Assembly: GCF_000002075.1 (NCBI RefSeq)
Contig: NW_004797318.1
Span: forward strand, 1,035,737-1,099,736
From: Aplysia californica
Taxonomy: Eukaryota
Direction of reading: 5' to 3'
Length of the DNA: 64,000 bases
Shown here: in pieces, positions 22,301-63,600 of the stretch
Position numbering within the stretch: position 1 is the stretch's first letter
Layout of the letters: every line of letters begins with the position of its first letter
Notes under the pieces: model-generated
Told to the model about the DNA's origin: nothing
Seen by the model: only the letters and a program-made list of their open reading frames with translations
Databases searched by the model: none
Position numbers and translations under genes: made by a program

Positions 22301-25300
22301 ATGTTTTTTCACTGTACAGGCCTGAGCATCCACACCTTCCACGGCAACTTCTTTGTGCGGTCGACGGACTTGCTGTCGCTGCCCAACATCAACCCAGACG
22401 CTGGCTTTGGCATGCAGATGTCCATAGAGGACAACCTGAACGAGTCCCCCACCGTCAGCTTCCAGGCAGCTCTGTTGTACACCTCAAGCAAAGGTACCGG
22501 GGATTGTTTGTGTGTGTGTGTGAAACAAGATTAAGGTCTTGTGAAGTCTGTTGAGTTTTTTGTAGTGAAAAAGATAAGGTGAGAAAATTATTTGATGGAC
22601 AGGATTTTTTTTGGGGGGGGTTGTTTTGTTGTGTGTTTGTGTGTGTGGTTTGTCTGCTGTAAAAAAAATGTAAGTGGTTGGATGATGGGTGTTTTCGTGG
22701 AGGTCTTCTCCTTCTGCTTCATTTGAGTGTTTCCATAGTCCCTAAGTATTGATCATGAACTGTGACAGTTGATATGGCAACTTAACTGCACTGTGCACAA
22801 CACAAAGAAAACCTAGAAACAGCCCTATCATATATGTGATATGAAGTGCCCCCTTATCTTTAAAGCAGAGAAAATGTTAATGATCCTACAAATGATGCTT
22901 TTTTGATGATTTTTCCTCCCGCCAAAATTGTTTCCCTGGAGAGCACGATGTCAGTCACTCGATATTACTGGCGTTTTTCCTTGTTTCAGGAGAGCGGCGA
23001 ATTCGAGTCCACACTCTTTGCGTCCCTGTCACAAACCAGATCGGGGAAGTGTTTGCTACAGCAGATCAGCAGGCTGTGGCGGCTTTGTTGGCCAAGATGG
23101 GTAAGTTGACAGCTTCCAAGTACAGGAAATTGATTTCTGTCGGAATGTGTTGTGATAGTTGAATTGTTTTTTGTTTGATTGCATCATGAGAATTCAGTAT
23201 TCTAGTCTTGGATATATATTTTGTTACCTGTGTTCATAGGGAATGGATTTGTTAATTTGTACTAGCCACATTTAATATCGTGTGTTCTTTATAGGTGGTC
23301 AGTGCGGCAATATCTCATTTATAATATTTGTCTTTTTTTTTCTTCTTCTTTTGTTTTAAAGAATTTGTCTGCCTTATTCTGGAGGAAATATTGTGCAATG
23401 CTTTACAAAAGGTAACCCTTTCATCATCAGATGTTAGTATCTTAACTTTCATTTCAGTTTTTTGTTTTTGTTTTTTTGGCAGTGATTGGTATTATTATGA
23501 CTTTGTGTTGTAAGGTCTGATTCCCTACCGTCAGCAATGTCTACCCATCTGCAGGGGAAAAAGAAGATTCATTGAAGATACTATTCTGTGTGTTAAAAAC
23601 GTGCCAGAGGGCTTAAATTAATGGTTTTATTTTCTCTCGCTGGCAGCTGTGGACAGGTCTCTCAACTCTGCAATCAGCGACGCCCGCGATGCCATGATCA
23701 ACGCACCAGTAGACACTTTGTCAGCCTACGCCCAGCAGGTCCCGGCCTCCCAGCGCGTGGGTGCCCTGTTAGCCCCGCACTCGCTGCGCCTCCTGCCCAT
23801 GTATATGCTGGCCATGCTCAAGAGTGTAAGTTATTGTTATTTTTAGATTTATACGGAACTTGCAGCACAATTAGGTCATATAAATAAATGCCGAATATAT
23901 TGCAAGAAAGTAACAAGCACATAAAAGGAGGGATAAGGGTGTGGGTGCCTTCTAAGGTCCATACTCACAGCGCCTCCTGCCCTTGTATATGCTGGCCATG
24001 TTCAAGAGTGTAAGTAGTCGAGTTTTTAAAAAAAATTTGTTTATTTATAAAGATTTTTGTTGTAGTAAGAGTTTTCACAGAACTTGTAACAAAATTAGGT
24101 CGTATATAAATGCTGAATATGATTTTAGCTCTCTTAGCAGGAAAATGACTTCATGTTGGATGGATGTAGATTTGTGCAACAGCAGCTCTCCATAGGTGTT
24201 AACAGAGCAACTTACACATGGGCGTCTGCCTCTTTATAGTCAGAGGTGAAATTGTAGATTTGGGGTGCTCAGGATTTGTACTACAATATGTTGATTGCTT
24301 ATTGTTAACTCTTTAAACCCTGTTTTTTTCACCGTTTCCCGGAGTTTTTTCTACAGTCACATAAACCTAGTGCTCTCTGTCGCATTACAACCCAAAAGTT
24401 TGCCTCAAACTTCTAAATGGCGAAAACAAATGCTTAGTCATTACTAAAAGACTTAGTTTGGGAATAGTTCAGAAAAACAAGCAAAAACTATCTCTAAATA
24501 AAATGAAAATGTTGTCACTAGTATCGGACCGATAAGGAGCAGGGTTATTACTGCCGGACGTTCCCAGCGTCCGATGGGGTTTATAGAGTTAAGACTCCAC
24601 CATATGCCAATTTTGAAAGGTGATGTTTGACGGAGTCTTACACAGAGCTGTCGATTTGTTTCTTGTTTTAATGAGTTGTTATTGTATGAATGTTTTCTAT
24701 TCTCCCTGTGCAGATTGCCTTCAGCTTATCCTCCAGTACCAAGACCGACGACCGTGTGTTTGCCATGCAGCAGTGTAAGGTGCAGCCGCTGTGCTACCTC
24801 ATGCAGAGCCTCTACCCTCACCTTTACCCACTCCACAGAATCAGTAGTGAGGTCAGTTGGCTTTACTTTACTTTATCCGTCCTCTTGTACCTCTAGGGCG
24901 TCGAGGGGAGAAAGAGCCTCCTGTCTCTATCAAGTTTGATGGCTTGGCTGGGTGGGGTATTGTATGTTATCAGGGTATCCTGGATCTAGGTCTTTCTTTG
25001 TCTTCCTCTTGCCTTGTACTCTGATACTTACCTGTAGTAGGCTTTACCGGCAAGCTGGTTAGGTGCCTTACGTGTGACATTTCTAAACCATCTGATTGTT
25101 TGCCTTAGAATGTAGTGGAGGACAGGTGTTGCTCCAACCATTTCTCTGATCTTGTTGTTTCTGACCATGTCCCGTCTGGTTTTGTTCGTGGCTCTCCTTA
25201 GACATCTCATCTCGCAAGTGGTTATCTTACGTTCCAGACTTTTGGTAAGGGTCCATGTCTGGCACTGGCAGGTCAAGTGGAGATGAAGATAGAGTTGATG

Positions 25301-36309: not shown

Positions 36310-36602
36310 CTAAATTTTCTTGAAAATCACATCCTCTCTTGAATTGACGGTCTGTAGTTCCACTTTCACTGGGCCTTTCAACCAGTGTGTGAGTAACTCC
36401 TCAGTGTATCCCTGCAGGAAGTAAACCTGTCGGGCCAGCATTCTGTCCATATTGACCAGGAAGACCAAAGTGATCATGTTGTGCCGTCGCTTTATCACCA
36501 CCTCTGATGCTAACGAATTATGCCAAGTGCCGAAAACAAATTTCCTGATGAACAAATCTTCAAATGTCGTTTCCGCAATACGTTTCTCGCCATGGAGATT
36601 GC
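36310..36602 (-). CDS. MRPS24: MRPS24 last exon
   Basis: tgtttcag|SNLHGEKRIAETTFEDLFIRKF...VIFKKI TAG. Confidence 0.95.
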
Positions 36603-39600
36603 CTGAAACAGAACAGAGATCAGGAATTGATAAAGGTCGACGGTTGATTTCTGCAAAGCTTGAGGGTGTTGAAGAGTACTTGGAGAGGTTGAGACACTAC
36701 TAAGAAGAAACGTGAACATTGACATGAGACAAATTTATATGGTACTGAGAAGGTGGCAGGGGGCAATCGTACGTGCGTGTACAGAATTTGTTCTGTTTAT
36801 GCACCTGTCATCTACTTGAAAACAAGGGAGATAGAGAAAGAGAGNNNNNNNNNNNNNNNNNNNNNNNNNNNNNNNNNNNNNNNNNNNNNNNNNNNNNNNN
36901 NNNNNNNNNNNNNNNNNNNNNNNNNNNNNNNNNNNNNNNNNNNNNNNNNNNNNNNNNNNNNNNNNNNNNNNNNNNNNNNNNNNNNNNNNNNNNNNNNNNN
37001 NNNNNNNNNNNNNNNNNNNNNNNNNNNNNNNNNNNNNGGGGGAAGGAGAGAAAGGTGACGGTAGGTAACTTCATCCTCAGTGTACACGGCTGTTACTATT
37101 ACATAAGTTTACAGTTACAGCCATTTTTCCTTCTAAAACAATTTATACATGATAGGTGCATGAATATAGTACATAGCTTTCTCTTTCTCCAGGCTTCCAC
37201 TAACCATTTCCTAATCATCAATACATGATATATTGAACTAGAATCTGCATTTGTTGCCATTTTTTTGTCCACAAGTTGCCACAAAAAGTGGCAAAAGTTG
37301 CCATAAAAGTGGCCAATAATGTTCAAGCTTTCAACTCTTGGTGACGACATAGCAATATGTTGAGAGAGGTAACTTAATCTATTAGTACAAGAAATTTCAA
37401 TATGTTCTGTTTTAATAAGCATCCAGAATATCATTTGCAGCCACATATAATGTAAAAACGTGAAAAAGAAGGTTTCACAGCAGAATGAAATCAAAGTTAG
37501 AACAGCACATAAACAACTACAAAAATTAACAACTAAAATAAGGGTGTTTGTATATCTTTCCAAAGATCTCCATTGGCTTCCACTAAAAGCCAAAATTGAA
37601 TATAAGTCAGCCCTACTATGCTTCAAAGGTCAAGCTAACCAGTCTCCCACATATATTCAAGAACTCATTGTACCATACGCACCATCACGTGAACTAAGAT
37701 CCAGTGGCTCTAGACTAATTTCAACACCTCGTAAGAAATATTTTAATTAATGGACAGTACCTTTGCCTTTTTGTATGAGCATTTTTTATTGTCGGAAAGA
37801 ATGTTGCGGTCAAAAAGTGCGCACATGTTTGTATGGTGTTAGTATGAATGCGTTTTTAATCTCCTATGTATGCCTTGGGCCCATGCTGTGGGGAAAGGTG
37901 GGATACAAATGCTCTTATTATTATTATTGGCGATTTTAACCCTAAACGTGTGTAATTTAAGAAAAAGTACAGGATTTTTTTGTTACTGTTTTGATGTGTT
38001 GTTTTTCTATTTTTTTGTGTTTGTGTAGCGTAATATAATTTAATTTGAGGTTGTTCCTACATTTTAAAAAAATAAAACGTTAATTTTGTAGTTGTTTGTA
38101 TGCTGTTCTAATTTTGATTTCATTCTGTAAATTATGGAATCACACACAAGGGGCCTGCCAGTGTCAGTACTCGGTTTTGGTGGAGACACGCTCTAATATA
38201 ACACATTATATTTATATTTTTGTAAAATGTAGGAACAACCTCAAATTAAATGATATTACGCTACATGAACACAAAAAAACCCAAAAAAAACAACACATCA
38301 AAACAGTAACAAAAAAAAACAAAACAACACATAAAAAAAAACAGTAACAAAAAAACTAACACACCGACAAATTAAAACACAACAAAAACGGAAAAGTAAA
38401 AGACAAACAGTAATATAGCATGTAATGTACCTACATTCTTAGCATGAAATTCAAAATACACGTATAATATGTAATGAAGTAGCCTTTTTTTTGTTGAAAA
38501 ATGCCAAATCGCTGCCCTGATTCGTGGACCAAAAAATGCCAAAAATCGCGGCCGCGGGTCGAGGCCGCGACAAACGCAGATGCTAGATGGAAAAGAGTTT
38601 CTTATCAGTCAAGTACATTGGATAGTAGCCACCGTCACCTGCTGTCGGCAACATTTTGCATGAGGAAAATAACGGCATTTCTTATCTTATACACATCACA
38701 CAAAGAGCAGCAGAGAACAAAATTAGTTCAGGTCTATGGGCATTCAGAAACTGTGGGAACAAAATGTCTTCAAACAGTCTTTGAGATTGACCTCAAAGTG
38801 AGAAGATTCCACAAGAGTGTTTACTGTTTATCTTATGAAACATGTTCACAATGGTAACTTTTATAGAACAAGCTTAGCTGAACTGAGAAGCAGTACATTC
38901 TAAAATTATTTCAGTCAGCACCGCAAGTTATTAATCTTTACCAAAGATAGTGAATAACAAGATGGGCCACTCAGCCAAAAAAGTGTCCGCAGGAAGTATG
39001 CTCTTTGCTTCAGATGGCGCTGCAGTCTGTTTTGAAGCTCTCTTTCATTTTTCCAGAAGAAGAATAAGAATAGCACCTCCTTGCGTGCGCAGATCGACTG
39101 CTGTTCATCAGCAGTTTGGGTACGTTCAGTGCGGAGTTTTAGTTTTTTTAAATATTTTAATGACCTCTCGCCTTTCATTCTAAAGTCAAATTAAACGAAG
39201 AAAACCATCACCCTTTCCTCCGGAAGAGGTTTTTTGTCAGCGTAACCATTTTAAAAAAGCGTTCTTCCGAAATTTATCCCAAAACTTGCTAGTTTCACTT
39301 TGATTTTTTTAAACTCAAGTAGGGTAACTCTGTTCGCAAAGAGTGCGCTTTTGTGAAGAGGGCGCCACCAAATTTTGAGGACACTTTTTTAATTGGCTCA
39401 AAGAGAGAAGTGGCCCATCTTGTTATGTACTATCATTGTCTTTACTAGAAGCTGTATACCACAGTTAGTGAACAAAAAAGATGAGCCGACTATTCACAAA
39501 AAGTACAAAAACCCATAGAAAACTAGAGTCTATGGGGCTTATTTTTGGTTTGATGCAAAAGAAAGATTAAAAAGTACTTCGGCAAAAATGAATGTTGAAG

Positions 39601-42600
39601 CACTCAACTGAGCTCTGTTTGCTTCAGCATGACATTAGCTTTCAGTGAAAGTTTTTATCTCTATGGCAAAATGGAGCAGTATTTTTAAAGTAAATCTTAT
39701 AATGAAAAGTATTATAAATCTATGTGCACTAGTTGAAATGACTCCTATCCCACTTCTAATTTCACTCAATTATCTACACTAAATTAAAGAGCAGAAACAG
39801 CAAGAGGAAGTTGATCACAGCATTCTCTATTTTACTTTGTCATCGAGGGGAAGGTCCAAGGGTAGGGAGTTGTCACCAAACCACCTGTCGCATGGACTGA
39901 ACTCAGGTCAGGGATTCATGCACATGCCATAGGTGTTATATAACAAGAAATGGAGACATAAAAGTAGCTAGTGAAGAGTAAAATGACTATGTCACAGTCA
40001 TTGAACTATGAAGCCTTGAAATTCAACGGTCAAATGAACTTTAGAGGGTCGAAACTGGTAGCAAGAAATCCTGGCTACATCCACTTTTGCAAAACAAATT
40101 GTATTCTTGTTCACGACATGAACACTACATGCTTAAATCATTAAATTTTTAGACTTTAGTAACCTTTAGTTTGAAGACATACCAATATAAAACAGGTTTG
40201 CACCAGGCAAACATTATGGTTCGCTATACCAGTCAAAAATGCTATTAAAAGAAAATGTCTGATAAAAAATAAAAATTAAAACTTGTTGTGAGTAACTTTG
40301 GCCTACAATACAATGCAGGAGACATGACACATTATTTAAGTTGTTAGGTATACCCCATTCTCTTGACTTATTGATACTGTAACTAATAACAGAAATGTGG
40401 TTTCATAGAAGACTGCTGAGAATATCTTGGAAGGAAAAGAAATTAAATGAAGTACTCGAAAAAACCCATGTGGGCCTCTCGCTGAAGGTAAAACCATCAG
40501 GAAAAGACAGGTAGTTCTTGGGAAGCTTAATTAGACATAAGGGCCTTGAACATCTAGCTCTCACTGACAAAATTGAAGGCAGAACGAGGCAGGGGAAGGC
40601 CCAGAGCAACCTACTTGAAGAGCCTAAACAGATAGGGTGACAGGGAAAGATCAGGGTAATGTAGCTTTTTTGAGAGCATCTGAGCAAAGGAATGAATGGA
40701 GAACCATGATCGCCGATGTCTGTCACAGATTTGGCACTTGATGAGATGATTTTGTATTTCCCTCTCCTCCTTCTTTCTCTTCCATTTGAGTCCACAGGTG
40801 AGTTAACAAATTAGGTTCACAAGGAATGTCAAGTGATGTTTGTGCCGACAGCTCACAGTGCGTTCTTAAAGCAAGGGAAATAGCCCACTTGAACATTTAT
40901 GTTCATACACACATAAATATGAGGAGTCCAACAATGCCACAATGATAATCTTACTTGTATTCCAAGAGAGCCATCCTTTCCTCACATTCATTTCAGATGG
41001 CGGGATTGCCTCTTCATACGTCAAAGGTTTTGTTCTGAACCTGGTCACTTTAGGAACTCCCGATTTTTTATTCTTGGCAAGGCAGGCTGTTGTAGACAGA
41101 CCCCGAAATGCAACGTTCAACGATGACAAAGGAGCTGCCCTGTTTAAAACCTGGATAAAGAAGAAATGAGAGAAGAAAATGTTATACAGAGACTACAAAA
41201 GCTCGGAATCACAATTCTTCAGTAAAACCAAGAGAGACTGGTGCTTCCCTTTTGACGGGCTTTTAGGTCTTTTACTGTGTTGAAAGGACGAGAATAGAAA
41301 AAGACTTCTTCAAGGAGCTCTGACTGAGACAGTTTTGAAAATTAATGTCTAGTTATATTTTTCTCCATAATGTATGTTCTAATTCTAATGTCCTCATTCA
41401 ACCAGGGTTGGGTTGATTTAAATCAGGTCGATTTAAATCAGTTGATTTTTTAAATTTAAATCAACTTCATTTTAAAAATAAAAATCAGTGATTTAAATCA
41501 CTTTAAAAAAATTGTTTTCAGTTTTTACATATACAGTTGAACCTGCCTTAAAGGAAACCTGTATAAAATTGGAAACCTGTCTCTACGGAATCTCCACGCT
41601 CCCCCCTTGATATATTCCTCTTTAATTACCTTTATAAAACGGAAACCTGTCCAACGCAGAAACGGAAAGAAAAATCTGCTCCCTTCCGATGGTTTCACTT
41701 GTCTAAGACAGAAAATGCTTTGCCCGCTCAGCCCTGATTTGAAACAAAACTCACAAGTTTGGTACCGCCGGCTCTAAACTTTATGCGATGGCCATGCCGC
41801 TGGGCGAGGAAGGGGAGATGGGGTGCAATTTGGGGGTAGATGTTACCCCATCATGTGAGCCCTGCGCGATGCAGATGGTCAGTGTAGTGTGGGTGTGAAA
41901 TCTCACGACTGCCCGTGAGAGTGCTCGAGTAACGAGCCACGACGGAAACTTTCCTGGGTAGCCAGAAGCCAGAGGTGTGAAATTAGATTGACCAATTCCT
42001 GCCGCCGTGATCGTACGGCCAGCCGAGAAAAGAGTTCCTCGAATCGTTGTTACAATGATGGCAGTGAGGGGTGGTATTGGTGGGTGGGGCTAAGGGTGGA
42101 AGCAAAGGAGATGTTCAAACGTTTCCATTTTTAATAGGTCAAACAGTGGTCCTATGAAAGGCAAGCACTGGTGGTAATTGGATTAGTAAGACAGACGCAT
42201 GTCATTATCAGGCAGGATAGCAATTGAGAGGTGTTAAGTTTTGACCACTGCTTGCCGATCGTACAAGCAATCTTTCATCCCACCGGCTGGGCCTTTGAAC
42301 CCCCCCCCCCCCAAACCTCCATCTCCCTCTAAATTCCCCTGTTTAAGACGGAAAATGTCTAAGACGGATTTTTCTTCTGTCTCCCTTGCGATTTCGTCTT
42401 ACACAGGTTCGACTGTATTTAAACATACAGATATATATAAGATTTAGTAGACTAATATAATCATGCTTAAAAGTTTGCTTTCCCCCCTGTCACTGTAAAA
42501 TAATACAGTATTCAATTTACTTTTTTTTTCATAATTGAAATTAGCATTTTAAAATATTTTTTTAGACAAACACAAGCACGTGCGCGCGCACACACACACA

Positions 42601-47879: not shown

Positions 47880-48090
47880 TTGGAAGTGCCACCTCTTGTT
47901 ATTGGTCAGTTATATTTATCCAGCGAATGAAAATATTCCATGGAAAGTTTCACATAACGGAAGTACGTAATCTGGATGACGGCCATTTTTGTATCACTCT
48001 CTGGACTATTACACGTCTTTAGGGAAGACGGCATTCGTGACAGCGAATCATAAACTTGTAGTGGATTTTGCGGCGTCAAATAGTAAGTTG
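47880..48090. promoter_or_regulatory. Putative bidirectional promoter of MRPS24 and Sar1
   Basis: ATTGG 47901, ETS CGGAAGT 47958, YY1-type GCCATTTT 47982, raised CpG, strand skew switch, plus-strand donor |gtaagt at 48083. Confidence 0.55.
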
Positions 48091-48951: not shown

Positions 48952-50251
48952 AGGGCCACCTCTATTCTCACCCGGGATGAGAATAGTGCAGGCTAGTCTT
49001 TTGGCTATTCTCACCCGGTGCGCGTTCACTGTTATAGCCTAGATCTAGGCCAACAAATTTTGCGTTCACCCTAAAACCACAGAATTCTACACTGTGATAA
49101 CAGAAAAATTGTAGAATTCTGTGCCGTGAACAAACGTTCCATTACAACTGTAGCCTACTAAAAGCGTACACTTTTGTATGTGGGCAGTGGAGAGAGAGAA
49201 AGAGACAGAGAGAGGAGTAGCGTGAGAACTTCCGGTCAAAACAAAATGGCGACCTGCGTAGTTCTGCTCGATTCGAAAAGTTAAATAGCCGTAGCATCTT
49301 TGTAGACAACCAAATTAATGGAGGTATGGAAGTGGCTATTCTCATCCGGGGTGAGAATAGAAAAACGATTTACCTCTCACCCCGGGTGAGACTTGCCAGC
49401 GTAGGCTATTCTCACCCGGTGCGAAACAAGACCTGCTTTTCCTCATTTTGGAATACTGTCTATCGGTGTGGATGATCAAATTGATAAAAGCCAAGAAAAA
49501 ATTACGTTATATAGCACAAAAGTAAGCTAATTTGATTGTCTTCAAAGATGCTATGGCTATTTCACTGTTCGAATCGAGCCGAACTACGCGGGTCGCCATT
49601 TTGTTTTGCCCGGAAGTTCTCGCAAGATCTACTCCTCCCCTCTCTCTCTCTCTCTGTCTCTTTCTGAATACTGTCTATCGGTGTGGGCGATCAAATTGAC
49701 CAAAACAAAGTTAAAAAATGATGTTAAAACACAAAAGTAAATTAATTTGGTTGTCTACAAAGATGCTACGGCTATTAACTTTTCGAATCAAGCAGAACTA
49801 CGCAGGTCGCCATTTTGTTTTGACCGGAAGTTCTCATGCTACTCCTCTCTCTGTCTCTTTCTCTCTCTCTCTCTCCACTGCCCACATACAAAATTGTACG
49901 CTTTTAGTAGGCTACAGTTGTAATGGAACGTTTGTTCACGGCACAGAATTCTACAATTTTTCTGTTATCACAGTGTAGAATTCTGTGGTTTAGGGTGAAC
50001 GCAAAATTTGTTGGCCTAGATCCAGGCTATAACAGTGAACGCGCACCGGGTGAGAATAGCCAAAAGACTAGCCTGTACTATTCTCATCCCGGGTGAATTT
50101 ACGCTTCGTTGTCGAAAAAAAATGATGTTATTTTAGCTCAAAAGTAGACTAATTTGGTTGTCTACAAAGATGCTACGGCTATTTCACTTTTCGAATTGAG
50201 CCGAACTACACCAGTCGCCATTTTGTTTTGCCCGGAAGTTCTGGCTACTCC

Positions 50252-50298
<47 letters not shown>

Positions 50299-50388
50299 TC
50301 TCTCTCTCTCTCAACTCAAGAGTGCTGGAACGTTTGTTCACATTGGTATCACAGTAAATGCACACCGGCTGAGAATAGAGGTGGCCTT
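48952..50388. mobile_element. Fold-back composite of the same repeat family
   Basis: Arms 48968-49319 and 49741-50096 are near-perfect reverse complements; outer IR ggccacctctattctca. Confidence 0.85.
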
Positions 50389-53259
50389 ATTATATGGCCT
50401 TACACTTGCCTTTTGTTTGTATTGTAATTGTAACACAGTCACCCCCTATAATCCTATATTATAGGTTATTTTTATACCTAGGCTGATTAAGTAGACTAGG
50501 TCTATTCATGTAATCACAAGGACATAAATTATAAATTCACTTAGTTTTCTTCTATTCCCACCCAGGTTGGAATACAATTTTCGATTCTCTCCCGAGGGGG
50601 GTAAAATATTTTGCCAATTTTTATGTTCCCACCATTTTTTCCCCGAAGTGATTATTCGGACTCGAGTCCGAATATGAAAAAATGTTATTCGGACTCTGAT
50701 TCTTGTCCAGCATGACATCACTTCCAACTTCCTGTGACTCGTGACTCCGGCTTCCTGTCTTGCCTCACTCGTGACTCGCCTCAGGCTGGGTAGAGACCGG
50801 GATCACTTCGGGCTAATCTTATGATGAATTTGAGGCCGGCCTGAAAAGTTATAGCGCTTCTAATAAATGTTTATTTGTCAAGAGGTCATCAGAAGCAATT
50901 AAAGATGGCTCGTTAGCGTGTGTCGGGGTCGGATGGGCGACCTGCACACACGTGTGGCTGTGTGCGTGGGGGGGGGGGGGGGCACTATCGGTCCGGGCGT
51001 TGAACGTCGCATACGCGTCAGTCTTTTTCCCCTCGGCAACTGATCATTATTACAATAATAAGCTAGTCTTGACGTAGATCTACGTAATGAATTGTGCGCT
51101 GGTCTATGGAATCAAAAGTTGCCGTATGCTCAGCTCTACACAGCAACACAACTTTTTTTTTCTGGATAAACAGCTCATAATATGCAGTTGCCAGGTGGTC
51201 TGCTAATCTTCAATTTCACCTTTTTCTACAACAAAGAAAGTGGGAAACATGGGGGGGGGGGGGGGGGCGTATCAATGAGGCGGCGGGCATCGGATTGGCA
51301 GAAAAGGTGGGGGGGGCTAAAAAATGGCGGAAAATTGGAAGCACTGAACGTTAGAACTATAGAACGAAGGCACTTCCTTTTTTCCGGACCCGAGTCCGAA
51401 TAACATTTTTTCATATTCGGACTTGAGTCCGAATAAAGAAAAAATGTTATTCGGGCTCGAGTCCGAATAACGACGGCCTTTTTTCCCCCGCCGACCGACC
51501 AACTATTTGTTTCCATAATTATTTGTTTTTCCAATTACCGATTTAGGCCTGGTTAAATTTAAATAGTGGCTTTACTTGGTGTGTGAATCTCATTCTTTTT
51601 TTTTCTTTTTAAATTGTTGACTCAGAAGGACCAAATTTTATCTCTTCAATTGCAAATTTTCTTCAGCTTCTGGGGGCCCTTGACCTGGTGGGATGCCAAA
51701 ACCAGAGCACCACTTTACTTTTTAAAAAGCTCATTGCTGTTTCCAAAAGATAACTTTTTCAACACTTCTACATCATGTCATGTATACTTCGAGTTGAGGA
51801 AGTAAAGGCGGCCTGGAAAGGAACTGGCCACCCGACCCCAATATGCCGAAGGCCCAGGAAGTTGTCTCACTAACAAGGCAATCCCCAATGTCCGGATCGG
51901 ATGCGGGAACAACTTTACTTTTACTACATATATAAATTCTGATAGTAATATACTTTAGACCAACATATGTCTATACTAAAAAAGAGGCACAAAAAGAGCA
52001 TTTTGGAAATTTTGATGCTGAAACCTTTGAATTTGGTTTAAAAACATATTTTTTATACCGTCCAACCAGAATCCTGTCTCCATAGACAACTATTTATGAC
52101 TACTTCTTGTGAGTAACGAGTAGTCTGACCCCTTTGATTACTTGGGGTGGGAGGGCGGTAGCCCACCCAATCTATACAGTGTAAAGTTAGAGAACCAACA
52201 CAGGCTTACACCGAGATATGAGAAGCCTCGTGGAGAGATGTCACAATTTTAGATTTTTGAACTGAAAGAAGGGGAAATATAAAAACAACAACAGATGAAT
52301 GAGTAAAAGGCGGAAGAAACGAATAGGTTTTGACACTGTATGTATACAAGATCGAATATATATCTTTGACAATGAATTTGCATCCCGATAATTACTCTTT
52401 TTAAAGTCTTCAATCAGGATAACTTGGATTTCAGAACGTAGCAAAGCACTATTTTTTTCTTTCAAAACTACATTCTTAAAAAAAAAATTAAGATAAAAAT
52501 AAAGTAATTGGGAATTGTTAGTTTACGGAAAAAGGGATCGGTTCTTTTTCTCAAAGCAGTAATCTCGGGGATCGGTTCTAGAATCGATTCTTGGCCCACC
52601 AGTACTTTACACTTTACGCACATATCCTTGACCAGTACCAGTAGCTTGTCCATACTTCAAATATTCATACAAGCAAAAGTATGACACTTTATATTGACAA
52701 AACAATCTGTTTCCACTTCAGTAAAAAAAATGATACACTGAAAAATTATAAGTGTCCACCCACTGTACTTTGAATAGTATCCAACAATGAATGTTGTTTA
52801 ACACCGTTGAAATGGCGGTAGCCGGGGTTAAATTTAGATTTCAACCCTTGGCAGTCTGTAAGTTAAAGAGTGGTTAATAATAATGTTATATTATGATTTT
52901 AGAATTTTTTATGAGGGGTTTTATCAGATGATACTGTGACTGTATAGAACTCTGTTGAAAAACAATGTGTTGGCTGTACTAAAATATGTTTTGTAACGTT
53001 TCACACTCTGTATTTTATTTTTTGTTTCTCTCTCTTTATACTGCCTTGCAAGGACTGTTAGTTATCTGGTCTGACATTAAAAAGTAGACGTTTATAATGT
53101 TTAATCTGTCTCTTTTTTTATTCCTTTAAAACAGATTCTGGTACTTAGTTTGCATGAACAGTCTACAAGGTTTTCAAGTTTTTTTTCTTTGGTAATAATT
53201 TTCTGATTTTGAATCCACAGGTTTTTTCAGCAACTGCAGGAAGCGTTAAAGAAGCAGCC

Positions 53260-53302
53260 ATGTTTTTAATGGAATGGTTCTCGTCTATGCTGAATTTTTT
53301 AG
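53260..53302 (+). CDS. SAR1: Sar1 first coding exon, amphipathic helix
   Basis: gcagcc[18 protein letters not shown]|gtatgg; exon acceptor at 53220. Confidence 0.93.
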
Positions 53303-56300
53303 GTATGGTAATTCAGGTTTTTGTAATCGTACAATATTTTTTGGGTCACGGTCATCATCATGTAGTAGGCCTATGGTAAATATTTTAGTATTCTTACTTT
53401 CCCTCCCGTCTCAACACTTAACTACCAGTTGTCTGTTTTCTATTATGGGCTGAGCCCGAATATCAACTTCATTTCCGTCACAAATTAATAGTTTTGAAAT
53501 TTTTGATATATATATATATGGTTTTTAATTGAGGGATACCTCTCTAATCCTAACCGCGTAGTAAGTTTTGCTCCTTGGACTAGTCCAGGGTTTCAGGGAG
53601 GGGGGCACGCCCTCGTTTTAATACGTAATTGGATAATTTGCAGTTAGGTTTGAAATTTTCTTGAAAAATAATAATTATTGATGTGAGACAGTTTTAGCGA
53701 CTTAATGTGTGATTTACAGCAAACAGTATCGGTATTGCAGTGCAATACGAAGCAGTGCATCTGTATGCGTGAGCGAAAGTAAAAATTTACCAATGCCAGT
53801 ATTTCTTTGCTGCTGAAATTGATATTGTTTTTCACTCTAAAAGGTCTGTATTTTCTTGAAATTGAAAGTTTTTCTTATTATACAGAGATCACTTAAAGTG
53901 AAATTCAAGAAGTCTAATTGTCTTTGACTGATTCTGTTGGTTGTTTACAATGTTTCGCATTTTGGGAAAATGGTTCAAAATATAAATTGGTAATATGTCT
54001 ATCACTGTATGAGCTATTTATCTTTTATTTAAAAAATGCCATGGGCTATATTAGAAAATAAAAGTCCAATGTTAACTTTTTTTGGTTACGATTGTCTTTT
54101 GTTATTGATTACCAGCATGTTTAAACTGGAACGATGTAATCTTACTCTGTTTTCTTCATTTCTTTATTGATTTTTGACTATGGATGAAATTCACACTAGG
54201 GTTTGGGAAGAAAGCTGGCAAGCTAATTTTGCTAGGCTTGGACAATGCTGGCAAAACTACTCTGTTGGGTGTCCTCAAGGAGGGTCACATTGTGCAGCCG
54301 GTGCCCACCCTGCACCCCAGTAAGTTAGTTTGTGGGTCTAAAACAATAAGCTGGCAGAGGGCCTATGTGTTGTGTGTGCATTTTGGCATGGACACTATAA
54401 TTGGAGTGTTGGAAAACTACGCAGCACTGTTTCTGAAGGCCAGCTTTCAAGGATTGAACGGAAACTGACTGTTACTAACACAATGTGCTCCATCTTGATC
54501 CTGAATTGACTGACTATTTCCCCTCTCTTTTAGTTTGTAGTACGGATTTAACCAGCTATTCTTGGTACAGTGTGGATGTGCATGGGCGTGCAAACCATTT
54601 TATGCAAAGTTTTGCTCTCAACGTTTTTTTGGGGGGATGGGGAGGGGGATAAATTTGCTGAATGAAAGAAGTGTATGGAAAGCACCCCCTCCCCTGAGCA
54701 TCCACACTGTTGTCAGTAAATACTTGTAGGTAAATGTTTTTCTCCCCTGCATGCTCACTGCTTTTTTTCTTTCTCTGTGCTTTTTTCACCCTCTGTGGCC
54801 AGGTTTATGGAAGAAATCGGGTAAATTAGTGTTCTTGGGCTTAGACAATGCGGGTAAAACAACACTGCTGCACAGACTCAAAGATGACAGAATGGCCCAG
54901 CATGTACCTACGCTGCATCCAAGTAAGTTGTTTTTCAGTGGAGATAAGTCATAGATCACTGGCGTTTGACCTAAACTTGCCTTGTCTTTTTGTTTCTAAC
55001 CCTGAGAATTGCTTTGATTTGAAGAATGGCTTTTTTTAGTTGATGAATGTGACATTAATGAAACAGTTTAAAAAAAAGTTTAACTAACCAGTGACGTAGC
55101 CTTGTTCCTTATAAATTGAACATTTTCAGTGAAACTAACGTACGTTTCATGTCTGTGTTGCTCCTTGATTTTCACAAATGATCAGATACTGGTCAAGAAT
55201 TAATATGAATGTTACTTATACAGTCTTTCTGTTATTATCTACACTGAATGACTCAGGCAGATTATTGTGAATATAACTATTGATAAAAAATGCAATTTAA
55301 ATCTAACAGTGTGGTATAACATGCATGATAATTTGTGCTGATTAAGTTAATAGAAATTTAACCAAAGTATTGTGAATGGAAAATATTCGGAGAGTGGTCC
55401 TTGGCTTTAGCAGTGATTGCTGATTTGCTAAGTGATGTGAAAAAATTACTGACACTAGTGAGCGGGTCCCTTTGTTAAGACATGCTTTACATAACATTCA
55501 CTTCGTGTGTGCTCATCAGACTCAAATGTGTAAAAACACGATTCAGAACTCCCCATGATTCATATTTTAATAATCTATTGATGCAGGTCATAGTTACTTT
55601 TTTTTTGGGGATGAACTTTGACAATGAGTGTGATAGTTGCACTTTTTAAAAACATTTGATAATGTAACAGTTTTTTAGTTTAATAAAATCTTTTTTTTTT
55701 AAATTCTACTGGCAGGCATATATTTGATTCAAAGTCAAAGAATGCTGGTGCTTAAATTTAATGGTTAGTTAATGGTTTAAATATATGTTATTCATTTTGA
55801 TTAATTGTTCAGTTTGTAATCCTCCCTGCCTTGTAGACATTGACATTAGTCTAATGGTGATTAGTAAATATATCTATTTTTTAAATGTGAAATGACACCC
55901 TCTCGCTCACTCTCTGTCTCATCTTTACTCAGCATCGGAAGAGCTGTCCATGGGAGGAATGAAATTCACCACATTTGACTTAGGTGGCCACAGACAAGGT
56001 GAGTTTTGATTTTTAGAAGTTTTAGTAAGAGTTTTAAGGCATTTGCAACACAATTTCTTATAAAGTGTGAAAGATCAGAGGTACTGGGTGTTATAAGAGA
56101 GTAACGGGGAAAAGAAGGGGAGATATTGATGATATATGTTTAATTGGAAAGAAGGAGCAAACCGCACCAGGCCACCTGCCAACCACCCACAGGTGAATTT
56201 TAAGGGAAAAGTGTTTCTTTTGAACAGCTGAAGGAGCATGCTTAGTGTTGATGAGAAAGAGACCATACGAATGTTCATGTCTTTCTTCTGAGAAACAAGC

Positions 56301-57580
56301 GTGGAAATGCCAGTTATAGTTTGAAAGTTGATTTCCAAGTTATTGGTTTTTTTCTCATCTTGCTATTCAATAATGGATTAAAACTAAAGCTGTGCTTTCT
56401 GGTACGAAGTTAACTCGAAAGGCGAGGGTTCCTATGTTTCTCCTTATATGTTAATAATGTTTTGAACCATGGTTGATTTCACAACGGTATCGATTCTAAT
56501 GAACAAAGTCTTTAATACTTTGAATAGTTTTTGCACAGTGGAATTTGATCAACTACATTACTATTGGAATGACAGTGTCAAGCTCCTTTTTTTAGAATTT
56601 AGAATTCTCTAGACCTCTACAGCTCATAAGAAAACATTAAGTAGAAGAGAGATGGTTTTGTTGTTTTTTTTTGTGGGGGGGGGGGGGGGGAAGGAGTGAT
56701 TTAACTGTTCCAAACTTAACCTGTGAGTTTGAAGTTGCAAAATTGTGGGATTCCCATGTAGGGTTTGAGTAGGCACTTCAGTGAAATTTTCAAACTTCTC
56801 CGGGGGCATTAAAATTTGGATTATTGAAAAGAGCTTGGCTTTCTGTTTTCAGAGCTTTTTAAATTTTTGCGCTATCTTTGTTAGTTTAGAAGCAGCGACC
56901 GTTTTTGTGAATCAATTTTCGCCCTGATTTGGCCAAATTTTTTAACTGCATTTTGTGCCACCAAAACTCGAAATTTTGCTTCACAAAGTCATAAAATCCT
57001 TAATAATAGTTGTATCGTGACCATTGAGGTATCATTTTGTTTGCTGTTTTATGTAGAATCAATATATAAAAATAAAAGTCAAGTACATTAGGAGTAAAAT
57101 TTTATTTACCGTTTAATTACGTCATAATCGTGACGTCGGGAGTCCAATGCCTATTTTCCCAAAAAAGATACGGGCACACTTTCCATACTAATGGTCCGAT
57201 TTTCAAAAGAAAAACATCACTCATTTTGTTTTAAAGAGTTCTGTAACTTGCTATAGGGGAAAATGATTAAAATTGAAAGCAGTTTCAATCTTACAGGCAT
57301 AACTCAAGCAGGAGGTTGACGGGTGCTCTGGGGTGTGGTTTGTTCTTTTTTTCCTTATTAACAATCAACGGTCCTTATCTCTCCTCGTTCTTTTCTGTGT
57401 ATGTTACTCTCTTGTAACACCTCTAGTCTTCGGGGCTTATAAGACCTATTTGTGTTGCAAGTGCCGTTAAACCCAAGCACAAGCATAACGCAGACTTGAA
57501 GAATATGAAAAAAATTCAACGAGTATGGTATAAAGCGGGAAATCACCATAGCATTATGACAATTACTGGGGGTCATCAAT

Positions 57581-57633
<53 letters not shown>

Positions 57634-60600
57634 AATATATATATATATATACACACACCATGCAATGGCTCATATCCCGAAGAACAGCGACACCAGTTCT
57701 ATGATCTACTGAGTGAATTTTTAAACATCGTGGATGACAAAGATAATGTGACAATGATGGGGGACTTAAACGGCAGAGTGGAAACAAGGAAGACGACGTG
57801 GAAGACATACATGCGGCCACACAGTGACAGGGATACAGATCAAAACAGCAATGGAGAAATGCTATTACATTTGTGTGCAGAACATGAGCTCGTCATATCA
57901 AATACCTTCTTCCAACACAAAAGGAGTCAAGTTAAAGAAAGAAAATCTGGATCGGTACTAACAATAGACCTAAGAAACTATATCAAACAAATAATTGCAT
58001 CAGAAACTTAAATAGGCGTTTCTATTTAATTTTTGACTGTGTTAACAACACTAGTCGGGACTCTTCATACTAGATCTAGGCCCTAGGCCTACGCACGCAA
58101 TGAAAGGCTTTGGGCAGGGGAAAAAAGGAGGGAGGGGCAGCTCTGTGAAAAGGAAATACTTGGGTCTAAAAAGTCTCGTTTTCTTTATACTATCGAATGA
58201 ACTAAGGCACAATGTGAGGTCAGTGATTATAAAACATTACCAAAATTGATTAACTTTTTGAACTAAAGTTTAAAAATCTCTTGGCGATGTATTTCCCTGT
58301 CTCGTACATTTCAAACAATGAAGAGAGGGAGCCAAAAGCTGAAGGCGAAAATGTGTGACGTCACGACTCTGCGCGATGTCGCGGTGGAAGGGTTCAGCTA
58401 GGTTTTCGCGGATTTGGTTGATAAAAGGGTAAGACTACACTAGCCAAGGTAAGACTTCTACGATAACCATTTAAACGTTTTCTGGAAGAACAAAGAATGG
58501 TTTACCAACAAGGGTAGTTTGGAAAAAATATGACGAGAAAATTTATCAAAAATCTATGGTTTAAAAATTGTCTATTTTTCAACTTCAAATATTTCGAGAC
58601 TCATTAGTCGCACATCGACCTGGAAAGAAGCGTTTTGAAGGCCATCCACAGGTCTTTAAAGACATGTATCGGACTTGAATGTTGGTCCCCTAAATTAAAC
58701 AAAAATATGGGCAGTTTGAACCCACTGTCGCGATGAGACGTCATGTCCGGAAACAAAACCCTATGGGACTTTCCGAAGCCAAATGACGCCATAGTGAGCG
58801 CGTTCACTGAAGTGCCTAGTTTGAGAGAACCTATTAAAAGTTTGATAAAAGATGGTGCTTTCGTCCTATGTTATCAGTTTTGGTCCTCGAATAATTAATT
58901 GTAAGAACTTATGGTTAGTTACACCCCTCTGTCATTTTAATAGCTTTGCATTCTTATGCCTTCTGATAATTTTTTGTTGTTCTTTGTTTGTTTGTTCTTA
59001 CAGCACGTAGAGTATGGAAGGATTATTTCCCAGCTGTGGATGGTATAGTTTTCCTCATTGACTGTCATGACAGAGCCAGATTTGTTGAAGCCAAGGCGGA
59101 ATTAGACGTGAGTGCCCATGATACACTTCTGTTGTTGTTCCTCACTCCTGTTGTTATAGAAAGAGTGTATTTGGTGTCAAGTTCGTAACGAAACACCAGT
59201 CCACAAAATCGAGTCCAAACCACTTATTCAGGTTTCTATTGAAAATAATAAGTCGCTTGTAGCTTGTAAAAACTTTTGTTGCCAGCTTGTTTTGATACAG
59301 TTCTTTGCCAAGTACGAGACAGTTTTGTTGTTTTGCCACTGCAAATCATACTACTAGAAAATATTTTTTTAAAGAAGAACAGGGCTGAATGAAATTAATC
59401 ATGTTGTGAATGTGCAGTGTCTTTGAGTGTGGCATTGATTTACGATGGGATTTTGTGGAGGGTTTAGGTGAAGAATCAGCTGTGATCGAGTTTTCGAACG
59501 TTAGATTCAGGAATAGAACTTGTTGTTATAAAATATTTTGTATGCTTACAAAAATTAAAGCTTGAAAAATTATGTGGCAATGGAGTCTTCTATAGTACTA
59601 GAAAAACTAAAAGCCTAATTTACGAGGACTTCTTAGTGTGGAGGGATGATTTTAAAATGTTCATTTTTTCTCCTACATCACCTTTTTGTCTTCAGGGCAT
59701 GATTTTGAAGCTAATTCGGTGCTGTATTCATTTTACTTAGATTTTATTTTGTTGGTGACATTTTTCTATGTAAAGTTAACTCACTGACTACTGGCCCCTT
59801 TCACAAATCACTAGTGCAGAGTACTGTCATTTTTGGGGGTATTTCAAAACACAACCACAACTATCAGAATTACCCTATTGTAATTATTTTTTGACACAGT
59901 AAAGTAACTTTCAAACTTAATCTATTGCAAAAAATTTAAGTTCTCTAGGTCTAATACTTTTACTTTAATTCTTTTGATTGTTTCAAAATTGGAATGAATT
60001 TGATTTTTCGAAAAATTTCCAGAAACATGACAGATAGAAGGAAATTCACAACAACAAAAATTAAAGTTCAAAGTGTTCTGTTTTGATTTGTATTCATGTG
60101 TGAGTGTTTGGTGAAAATATAAAAGCTGGTCTGTGCGTTTATTCAGACCCATATACTGAATTACATGAGACAGATGGAGGGAACGAAGTTGTGATTTCGT
60201 CGCGTGAACAACAACAACAATACTAGTGCTAGATCTAGCCCTAAAACTACGACTCGGGCCGTGTTCGGGTACATATCCAGGGTCCTAACTATCAGACATA
60301 TCATGTCCTGAGTCACTAGAACAAGCAAAACGTGCAAAAGTATCGAAAACAGCGAAATTATGTGATTCTTGTTCATGCGACCGTAACTTCAACACGATTG
60401 TCGGATTACTATCATTTGTATAGAAAAAACATAGCGCGAATTCCGGTCAGGTCAACCCCAGATGAGGTGACTGTCCTTAACCTTCAATTGCTTAAAAAGT
60501 TACCATGAAACTTCCGCCAAACTCGGCACGAAACGTAACAAGAGGCAAAACTAGCACCGGAGTCCGTTCCCTTACATGTGTCGGGAGTTGGGAGCACAAG

Positions 60601-63600
60601 ATACGGAACAAAACCGCAAAGTCAACCCATGACGGGATCCGTAGTATGTGAGTTAAATCTGTAATGTAGATGCCTCAGTGCCTGATCTAGAGGCTTCACC
60701 TACCTTCTTCTCTGTAAAAGAAAACCATTTCTATAAATATTCAGGAGGCCAGAAATTAGGTTTATTTATCCCTTGTTGTGCCATTAGTGAATCTTTGAAC
60801 AGATTTTACAGTGCTGCCCAAGAGTGTTATTGTAATTATAAAAAATTATGAGCANNNNNNNNNNNNNNNNNNNNNNNNNNNNNNNNNNNNNNNNNNNNNN
60901 NNNNNNNNNNNNNNNNNNNNNNNNNNNNNNNNNNNNNNNNNNNNNNNNNNNNNNNNNNNNNNNNNNNNNNNNNNNNNNNNNNNNNNNNNNNNNNNNNNNN
61001 NNNNNNNNNNNNNNNNNNNNNNNNNNNNNNNNNNNNNNNNNNNNNNNNNNNNNNNNNNNNNNNNNNNNNNNNNNNNNNNNNNNNNNNNNNNNNNNNNNNN
61101 NNNNNNNNNNNNNTTTGTTATAAGAAATGAATTAGATGTATGTGAAATTATCCTTGCACGACATGTTTCCCTCTTGTTTGTGGCCCTACAGAGTTTACTA
61201 ACAGACGAACAAGTAGCCAACGCCCCAGTGTTGATACTGGGCAACAAGATTGACATGCCAGGTGCTGCCAGCGAGGAAGAGATCAGGCACTGGTTTGGCC
61301 TGCACAACTTGACCACAGGGAGGGTAAGACACTTTTACTTGCATACTTACATTCTTTTTGTTTATTAAACTGTGGAAGTATAATGGAGAACCTGTGTACC
61401 ATGGTTATTATACGTGTAACAACGCGGTGGAATCAGGCGCTTGCCAATTTTTGGGTGTTTAGAGTTATTGTTATCATCTTAACTCATTGACGACGCAAGT
61501 TTTTCACCAAAAATTTCCCTTGAGACGCACGATTCTTACCTATTTTTTAAAAAAGTCAGTGTGATAAACCTATCAACTGTACAGGTATAAAAGTTGACAC
61601 AAAGTAAGATCATCATGTATACTTACATAAAATGTATTTATTTGTACAAAAACTTTGAAAAAATTATGTTTTAGGTGAAAAAAAAAATTATATGTAAACG
61701 TGGAAAAAAACTTTTTTTTATGAGCTAAGCACATGGATCTCAGAATTGATCGTAGTGAATTAGAATGGTTTCAAACAATTAATACTGAGTGATATTATCT
61801 ATAAGAATAGTGACATTGCCAGGAGCATTGTAGTCTCCTGAATCAATAATCCCTAGCGCTTCGTTGGTTTCTTGTTTACGTAAAAAGTAGGTCAGGTCAG
61901 GGTGTTTCGGCAGATTGCTTATAGCTGACAATTTGGGTGACCAATGGTCGAAGGGATACAACCACGATAAAGTTAAATGGTTTAACTAACACTGGGAGTC
62001 ATTCCCCTTTAGATTCTTCAGAGTTTGTTGACCTCGCCAGGACCCGGCACGTCGTCAATGAGTTAAAGGTTTTTTTTGTCTTGCTTTTGATGAAAAAATA
62101 CCCGCCTTTCTTGAATAGAAGTCAGGATATTTGGAATTACAAAAAGTGGGGGTCTATTGGTTTCAGAGGTAAAGTTAGTGAGAAAATGGCTGTCAAATAT
62201 TGGTGACCTCTTTAGTTTGAGACTTATAGTCAACGTTTTTTTTTTATAGTAACATCCACACAGAAATGTGTTTTTGAATAGACATGAAAGGTATCGAGTC
62301 AAAAGATAAAAACTAGATACAAATTTCCAAACCAGTAAAAAAAATGCTGGTTTCTACGATTTTATTATTTTGACGAGGGCCTGATTTCACCATGATGCCG
62401 TACATATTTTATTGAGGGATTCCAAGCATTTCTGGACAGATTTATTGCTGGTTTTTTAGTCTTTTGAATGTTTTTCGATGATGGGCAAAAATACAAATAA
62501 GAAAAGAACTGAAGGGGTGTTGTGTTGGGCTGTTGTTCTATATGTAATAAGCTATTTTGTAGGTCTGTCATATCCCTTTTATATTGGTTTTACTTGTCAC
62601 ATTATTTTTTTGGTTGTATTCGGCTGTTGTATAATTGTCATGGTCTCTCTTTTCCTTCTCCTGGGGTACTTTGAAATTGATGTGATTTTGGAAGGTCTTT
62701 TTTCTTTCTTGTCTGTATGTTTTTTTCTCGGTGATCCTTTTCGTTTTTTCATGTACAATGTATCGTTATCGTTCAGGTCAATCTTTTTTCTTTCAAATCC
62801 CCCTGTGCGCTTTCTCTCCATTCATCAAAGTATTTGTGACTGGAGACTGGAGGGTTCCAATGTATTATTTTTTTTTAGAGAAATTTTTCTTCAGTTGTTT
62901 CAGTTTCAGGGGTGGTTTGCAGGTGCTCTGGTGTGATTTGCTCCTTCTTTCCTTTCAAGCATTTACCATCCTGATCTCTCCTCCTCCTTTTTTTGTGGGT
63001 GGTTGGCAGGTGCTCTCGTGTGGTTTTCTTCTTCTTTCCTATCAAACATTTATTGTCCTTATTTCCCCTCCTCCTTTTTTGTGTTTATTACTTTCTTGTA
63101 ACACCTCTAATCTTCGGCACTTATATGACCTTATTGTGTTGCAAGTGCCGTAAAACACTTACTAAAACTAAAACTAAACTTTTTTTTCTGTGTTTGTTAC
63201 TCTCTTGCAACACCTCTAATCTTCAGCACTTACTTTAATGATCTTATTTTGTTGTAAGTGCTGTAAAATTTACTAAAACTAAACAGCTGAGACGAAAATT
63301 AGTGTGCTCGATATGTCATACCACTGATCAGTTTTATTATGACCAACAACCCATTTGTAATGTGTTGGTGGTTGGTGGGTGCTTTGATGTGTTTTTTTTC
63401 TTTTTTTTTGTGTGTGTTGGTTAATCCCTTGCAACACCTCTAGTCTTCGGGACTTATATGATCTAAATGTGTTGCAAGTGCCGTAAAACTCTTACTAAAA
63501 CTAAGCTAAACAACTGAGACGGAAATTAGTATGCCCGATAGGTCATACCACTGATCGGTTTATGATGAAATGGTGTCATCTTATTAAGGCCTAACAGCCC

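Follow-up and report, generated by a model that had tools for sequence, protein, structure and literature searches.

The window, a stretch of 64,000 nucleotides of the Aplysia californica genome, contains on its forward strand a gene for the GTPase Sar1, the COPII initiator that sets off secretion from the ER; its exons are listed in Table 1. With a single exon 2 the coding sequence comprises 582 nt (43+120+66+104+132+117) that encode 193 amino acids and a stop codon. The introns of the gene are of the GT-AG type throughout; an N gap (60855-61113) sits in intron 4 and the flanking exons stay in frame. In homology searches in which the exons were used one by one, no Sar1 locus besides this one was found in the assembly. 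The remaining matches showed about 35% identity to the Sar1 query or were Arf-like where they were read. That transcripts with the alternative exon 2a come from a second Sar1 gene is rejected, as no such gene was found there. The named proteins closest to the constitutive exons are those of Biomphalaria.

Table 1. Exons and candidate regulatory features of the Sar1 gene in the window, and the upstream exon of insect Sar1 genes
Feature	Position	Strand	Description	Evidence
Sar1 first coding exon	53221..53302	+	ATG 53260; N-terminal amphipathic helix, residues 1-15	sequence; RNA contigs X6, X7 from 53221
Alternative exon 2a	54200..54319	+	residues 15-55, derived copy	sequence; X7 contig; orthologous exon in other molluscs
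Candidate 20-bp intronic stem	54567..54710	+	arms 54567-54586, 54691-54710	weak lead only
RBFOX-type TGCATG	54748..54753	+	55 nt upstream of 2b acceptor	motif comparison across loci
Alternative exon 2b	54803..54922	+	canonical Sar1 residues 15-55	sequence; joints 1-2b (X6, X7), 2b-3 (X6, one X24 read)
Exon 3	55933..55998	+	interswitch, DLGGH	sequence; RNA joints
Exon 4	59004..59107	+	switch II to helix 3	sequence
Exon 5	61192..61323	+	NKID	sequence
Exon 6, including stop codon	63635..63751	+		sequence
Insect upstream Sar1 exon	L013:9999-10112; L014:10110-10229; L025 ~1262-1375; L095		degenerate P-loop	

MRPS24 (36313-41069, reverse strand) lies head-to-head with Sar1 and is its neighbour also in the loci L009 and L011. 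Further upstream, a gene of the Sec24A/B type occupies approximately 2400-24000 of the forward strand, with trunk matches at 18281-18589 and 21160-21273 and a helical match at 23631-23828; two COPII genes are therefore clustered. Human SEC24A and SAR1B are presumably adjacent as well, suggesting an ancient SEC24-SAR1 linkage. A 215-nt tandem repeat with dispersed copies and CT tracts is located upstream of Sar1 at 49451-49872 and 50100-50320.

The second coding exon is present in two copies. As described in the first-pass annotation, both are 120 nt long, of phase 1-1, bounded by AG and GTAAGT, free of stop codons and 483 nt apart. They encode the same residue in 26 of the 39 whole codons, 16 times via different codons; addition of the split Gly codon reproduces the earlier values of 27 of 40 residues and 17 different codons. 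The near-saturation of synonymous sites was likewise recovered (Nei-Gojobori pS 0.80, pN 0.20), as was the concentration of 8 of the 13 changes at residues 38-48, where the loss of charge amounts to a decrease of K, R, D and E residues from 5 to 2. An assembly duplication as the source of the pair is rejected because identity between the copies is just 65% and other species have the pair too. Within 54837-54922, residue 39 of 2b is Arg, which in most animals is Met (HRLK vs HMLK); this Arg is common to L004 and the transcript L028 and hence marks a lineage.

RNA was searched for positions 52500-56600 of the window in the runs X6 and X7 (contigs) and X22 and X24 (raw reads); the RNA nature of X6 and X7 is a guess with which their spliced joints agree. 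A 546-nt contig of X7 covers 54205-54319 and then passes straight to 55933, with GT..AG intron ends, so that 2a is spliced to exon 3 and 2b is skipped. The joint of exon 1 with 2b was seen in X7, the succession 1-2b-3 in X6 and the joint of 2b with exon 3 in one raw read of X24. The 2a-3 joint is supported by a single contig from a single run, and isoform quantities cannot be read from contigs; coverage of the gene by the raw reads of X22 and X24 was almost zero. Joints between 2a and 2b or between exons 1 and 3 were not seen in these thinly covering runs, nor was a 1-2a joint in the Aplysia runs, in which the sole 2a contig ends 5 nt short of the exon start; full 1-2a-3 isoforms are annotated in other molluscs. 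Exons 2a and 2b are thus genuine alternatives, both of which are used in RNA. Far from being a sequence that is never spliced in and is absent from relatives, 2a is joined to exon 3 in RNA and is intact across molluscs.

At their 5' ends the RNA contigs also have 82-184 nt that do not belong to the examined stretch. The gene likely also has a non-coding first exon upstream at 47960-48083, the donor of which lies near 48083, as well as another acceptor at approximately 53136, within 53121-53140. Short repeat fragments in the Sar1 introns (56017-56055, 56130-56195 and 53450-53670) draw thousands of reads from other transcripts.

A search with 2a alone retrieved a distinct family of exon-shaped open reading frames with the signature LL[SG]VLKEGH..QPVP. 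The tandem of 2a followed by 2b occurs in six independent loci (L004, L005, L007/8, L009, L010/11, L012), where both exons are exactly 120 nt long with AG/GT ends and lie 248-1654 nt apart, 2a always upstream. L015 contains the same pair, which brings the number of loci besides the window to seven. RefSeq includes unnamed 2a isoforms of a chiton, a limpet, an apple snail and Biomphalaria. The proteins XP_064601537 (2a) and XP_064601545 (2b) of the chiton Liolophura differ solely in exon 2, as do XP_025097842 (2a) and XP_025097832 (2b) of Pomacea; further 2a isoforms are XP_050391097 of Patella, XP_013073226 of Biomphalaria and KAL3876341 of the bivalve Sinanodonta. Since 2a isoforms are found in a chiton, in snails and in a bivalve, the pair predates the split of chitons from snails and bivalves, which occurred over 500 million years ago.

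Between species, the mean pS of exon 2a is 0.85 and its pN 0.145, compared with a pS of 0.77 and a pN of 0.051 for exon 2b. Judged by these values, both copies are constrained, 2a less tightly than 2b; 21 columns are invariant among 18 aligned 2a copies. The old duplication under purifying selection that had been deduced from the Aplysia pair is borne out by the relatives, in which 2a is intact: the pair is present in seven other loci and in five named molluscs, with pN far below pS. The RNA use of 2a, its occurrence in other loci and the low pN relative to pS reject its interpretation as a decaying copy or pseudo-exon. We consider it likely that the tandem duplication of exon 2 is older than the divergence of chitons from snails and bivalves and that either-or splicing of the copies yields two Sar1 GTPases of 193 amino acids.

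The L006 locus (8302-8421) and the transcript protein P0157 represent diverged Sar1 paralogs with a 2a-type exon only; in this case the splice pair apparently gave way to a gene of its own. In L007, Sar1 is directly followed by a second Sar1-like gene that is inverted and strongly diverged (approximately 6190-6790, reverse strand).

How is one of the two exons chosen? Steric exclusion is rejected for molluscs, whose inter-exon introns of 248-1654 nt have ordinary AG-exclusion zones, and since the inclusion of both exons stays in frame, it would not lead to nonsense-mediated decay. Competing RNA stems of the docking-site/selector type are a weak candidate mechanism. The stem listed in Table 1 is the best in the inter-exon intron of the window (p ~0.01 vs shuffles) but is unsupported across species or by folding. 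The best stems exceed shuffled sequences in 4 of 8 inter-exon introns and also in 4 of 15 controls, and a duplex test was significant in 1 of 8. QKI motifs are not enriched around the exons.

The introns flanking the pair are otherwise unalignable between species and contain no conserved sequence blocks, but a short motif recurs. Of 11 duplicated loci, 8 have TGCATG in the 100 nt that precede the 2b acceptor, among them those of Periplaneta and a termite (see below), as opposed to 2 of 29 other Sar1 acceptors, none of 10 2a acceptors and none of 5 single-exon loci (Fisher p = 2e-4, the window not being counted). No hexamer is more frequent before 2b, although it is missing there in L007 and L012. 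Within 200 nt downstream of 2a, GCATG is present in 7 of 8 loci, with 8 hits vs 1.5 expected. The pyrimidine tract in the window scores 0.80 for 2b vs 0.53 for 2a. RBFOX proteins usually repress exons from upstream and activate them from downstream, and they drive neuronal and muscle splicing programs (PMC11874969). It is fairly probable, given the position of these motifs, that 2b is the default exon and that RBFOX-rich cells switch to 2a. RBFOX bound to the TGCATG directly before 2b would repress 2b, and RBFOX bound to the GCATG directly after 2a would activate 2a; with 2b repressed and 2a activated, RBFOX-rich cells such as neurons and muscle would use 2a. The putative sites predict a form with 2a that is biased to neurons or muscle, and the choice is probably made tissue by tissue via RBFOX. 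The Fox-1_C Pfam model, the one RBFOX domain searched for, had no match in the Aplysia genome.

The consequences for the protein were considered in human numbering, in which residue n of the window protein corresponds to n+5. The P-loop GLDNAGKTT and the VPTLHP segment with Thr56 and Leu57 are identical in 2a and 2b, and a GxDxxGKT P-loop with Asp34 and Thr39 as well as Thr56 and Leu57 of switch I are invariant in the 18 mollusc 2a copies. Of the P-loop/switch I swap proposed in the first-pass annotation it remains that the exon carries the P-loop, whereas the P-loop itself and the catalytic core of switch I are unchanged. The two forms differ at residues 21, 22, 25, 29 and 30, at the end of the amphipathic helix and in beta1, and within residues 43-53, at the end of helix 1 and the start of switch I. 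The aromatic residue at position 22 is lost in 8 of the 18 2a copies; in the GTP state, Leu21 and Tyr22 of Sar1 lie buried in the membrane (PMC9974494). GDP-bound Sar1 is disordered at residues 49-54 (PMC2150902). The Sar1-Sec12 crystal structure shows a disordered switch I and an interface made up of switch II, the P-loop, the interswitch and helix 3 (bioRxiv 10.1101/2020.10.08.331793). The earlier suggestion that the swap alters contacts with Sec12 is not borne out, because switch I lacks order in the complex and the interface lies elsewhere, in elements identical in both forms.

Residues like those of 2a (VLK[EQ]G) are present in ordinary single-copy Sar1 exons of non-animals (protists), and the 2a residues partly resemble switch I of Arf1. 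Modelled from an alignment, the 2a isoform of Biomphalaria retains the Sar1 fold, with low confidence for residues 43-56; the model is silent on function, and the structure predicted from a single sequence was poor (pLDDT 48). With its intact P-loop, switch I Thr and Leu and switch II, mollusc Sar1-2a may well be an active GTPase that is retuned at two surface patches, namely the end of the membrane-inserting helix (Leu21/Tyr22) and the helix 1/switch I loop (43-53). Changes in these patches would affect membrane insertion, switch dynamics or the affinity for coat or effectors, not recognition by Sec12.

It is improbable that the exons, although real, are nearly equivalent, such that 2a is kept only because transcripts using it must work and its surface differences reflect relaxed drift. 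The approximately threefold faster non-synonymous evolution of 2a than of 2b, the unaltered P-loop and catalytic residues, the 2a-type residues of protist Sar1 and the disorder of the changed loop in the GDP- and Sec12-bound structures would all fit near-equivalence. However, the 2a signature [SG]VLKEGH..QP (vs HMLKDDR..QH) is held in a chiton, a bivalve and gastropods, and its retention across classes argues for a distinct conserved state instead of random drift. In addition, the conserved RBFOX sites imply a regulated choice, and a paralog with only the 2a type exists (L006; P0157).

An upstream exon that takes the place of 2a but is much more diverged is present in cockroaches, termites, stick insects, a leafhopper model and Tenebrio. 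It measures 114 nt in Periplaneta, where a 65-nt intron separates it from 2b, and 120 nt in Tenebrio, with an intron of 44 nt that is probably too short to be spliced, so that steric hindrance would apply. Asp34 is replaced in the insect exons, often together with Thr39 (GKAS, GKAT, GRST). Both residues are essential for Sar1, and T39N is dominant negative (PMC2150902). A contig from JGI, which matches the Tenebrio locus without differences, joins the upstream exon directly to exon 3; it retains intron 1, has a chimeric end after about 30 nt and provides modest evidence that the exon is used. No duplicate exon was found in the DNA examined of three other animal Sar1 loci (L018, L021, L029). 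In a tree of 39 exon columns, insect 2a falls on the side of mollusc 2a; in the AU test, neither a shared origin (p 0.07) nor a separate insect duplication (p 0.20) was rejected.

The insect upstream exon possibly gives rise to a decoy isoform. To extend this to 2a as a whole, as an inhibitory or attenuated Sar1 that through slow exchange or as a decoy throttles ER export, is improbable: the replacement of essential residues in the insect exons and the splicing of the Tenebrio exon to exon 3 in an RNA-type contig would suit such a function, but mollusc 2a has the full GLDNAGKTT and VPTLHP, and the trees neither establish nor refute that the insect and mollusc exons are homologous. For molluscs we retain the active, retuned form. 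A broader scenario is put forward tentatively and is in our view doubtful: the duplication would predate the mollusc-insect split and have given protostomes an ancient, RBFOX-switched second Sar1 from one gene, biased to neurons and muscle, which remained active and was retuned in molluscs whereas in insects its P-loop degenerated, resulting in a pseudo-GTPase or T39N-like protein that throttles or reroutes ER export.

Models containing both exons exist for Pomacea (XP_025097823, 233 aa), Batillaria (KAG5713731) and Timema and result from either predictor chaining or leakage. That 2a is a cassette included alongside 2b, or that the isoforms stem from gene predictors and RNA leakage, is very improbable: these models and the lack of a steric or NMD barrier in molluscs would allow it, but the 2a contig leads directly to exon 3 without any 2a-2b joint being seen, the RefSeq pairs differ by one exon, a doubled P-loop would, given the established structure of GTPases, break the fold, and the short Tenebrio intron probably cannot be spliced. 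The mutual exclusivity suspected at the outset agrees with joints that contain one exon and with the lack of double or skipping joints in the thinly covering runs; given the 233-aa RefSeq model of Pomacea, it may be less than strict. Either-or splicing that yields two Sar1 proteins remains our preferred reading.

Vertebrates diversify Sar1 by gene duplication (SAR1A/SAR1B) and plants have Sar1 paralogs; the known differences between Sar1 paralogs lie mainly outside residues 20-60. Like these organisms, molluscs would have two Sar1 forms, but from one gene, by splicing; L006 and P0157 are the gene-level counterpart of the 2a type, comparable to the vertebrate and plant paralogs. Tandem-duplicated, mutually exclusive exons are known from RAB6A, RAB37, RAB28 and GNAO1 (PMC9741552 supplement, PMC8373072), and the Sar1 pair resembles them in that the exons are homologous, ancient, of equal length and conserved in their core, with differences in surface patches (shown for RAB37). 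It departs from them in that it belongs to the COPII initiator, of which the exon encodes beta1, P-loop, helix 1 and switch I, and in its occurrence in protostomes. SAR1 is not contained in the human catalogues of mutually exclusive exons (PMC9741552, PMC8373072). Alternative splicing of COPII components is known for Sec16A (PMC4980449) and SEC31A (PMC12265942), where it adjusts ER export to the tissue or state. The exons concerned are cassettes and belong to scaffold or outer-coat proteins, unlike the swap inside the GTPase core of Sar1. RBFOX sites control mutually exclusive exons of unc-32 in C. elegans (PMC3585155), and egl-15 is a further case (cited in PMC11874969). The Sar1 genes share with these the UGCAUG beside an exclusive exon pair in an invertebrate; the unc-32 site follows the second exon, whereas the putative Sar1 site lies between the exons, upstream of 2b.

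No description of exclusive Sar1 exons was found in the literature searched, in which subscription journals are mostly absent. The Sar1 exon pair is real, ancient and apparently undescribed, though automated RefSeq models include the isoforms. To our knowledge, Sar1 has been treated in invertebrates as a single, nearly invariant protein. The exon pair places a splice switch in the core of this GTPase that has been kept since the base of Mollusca and is echoed in insects. The 2a and 2b forms are a natural matched pair, 13 surface residues apart, which allows the role of Sar1 variants in tissue-specific or large-cargo secretion to be tested. It is predicted that in sea hares, snails and bivalves the neurons or muscle have a Sar1 to themselves, and that one of the Sar1 isoforms expressed by some insects has a broken nucleotide-binding motif.
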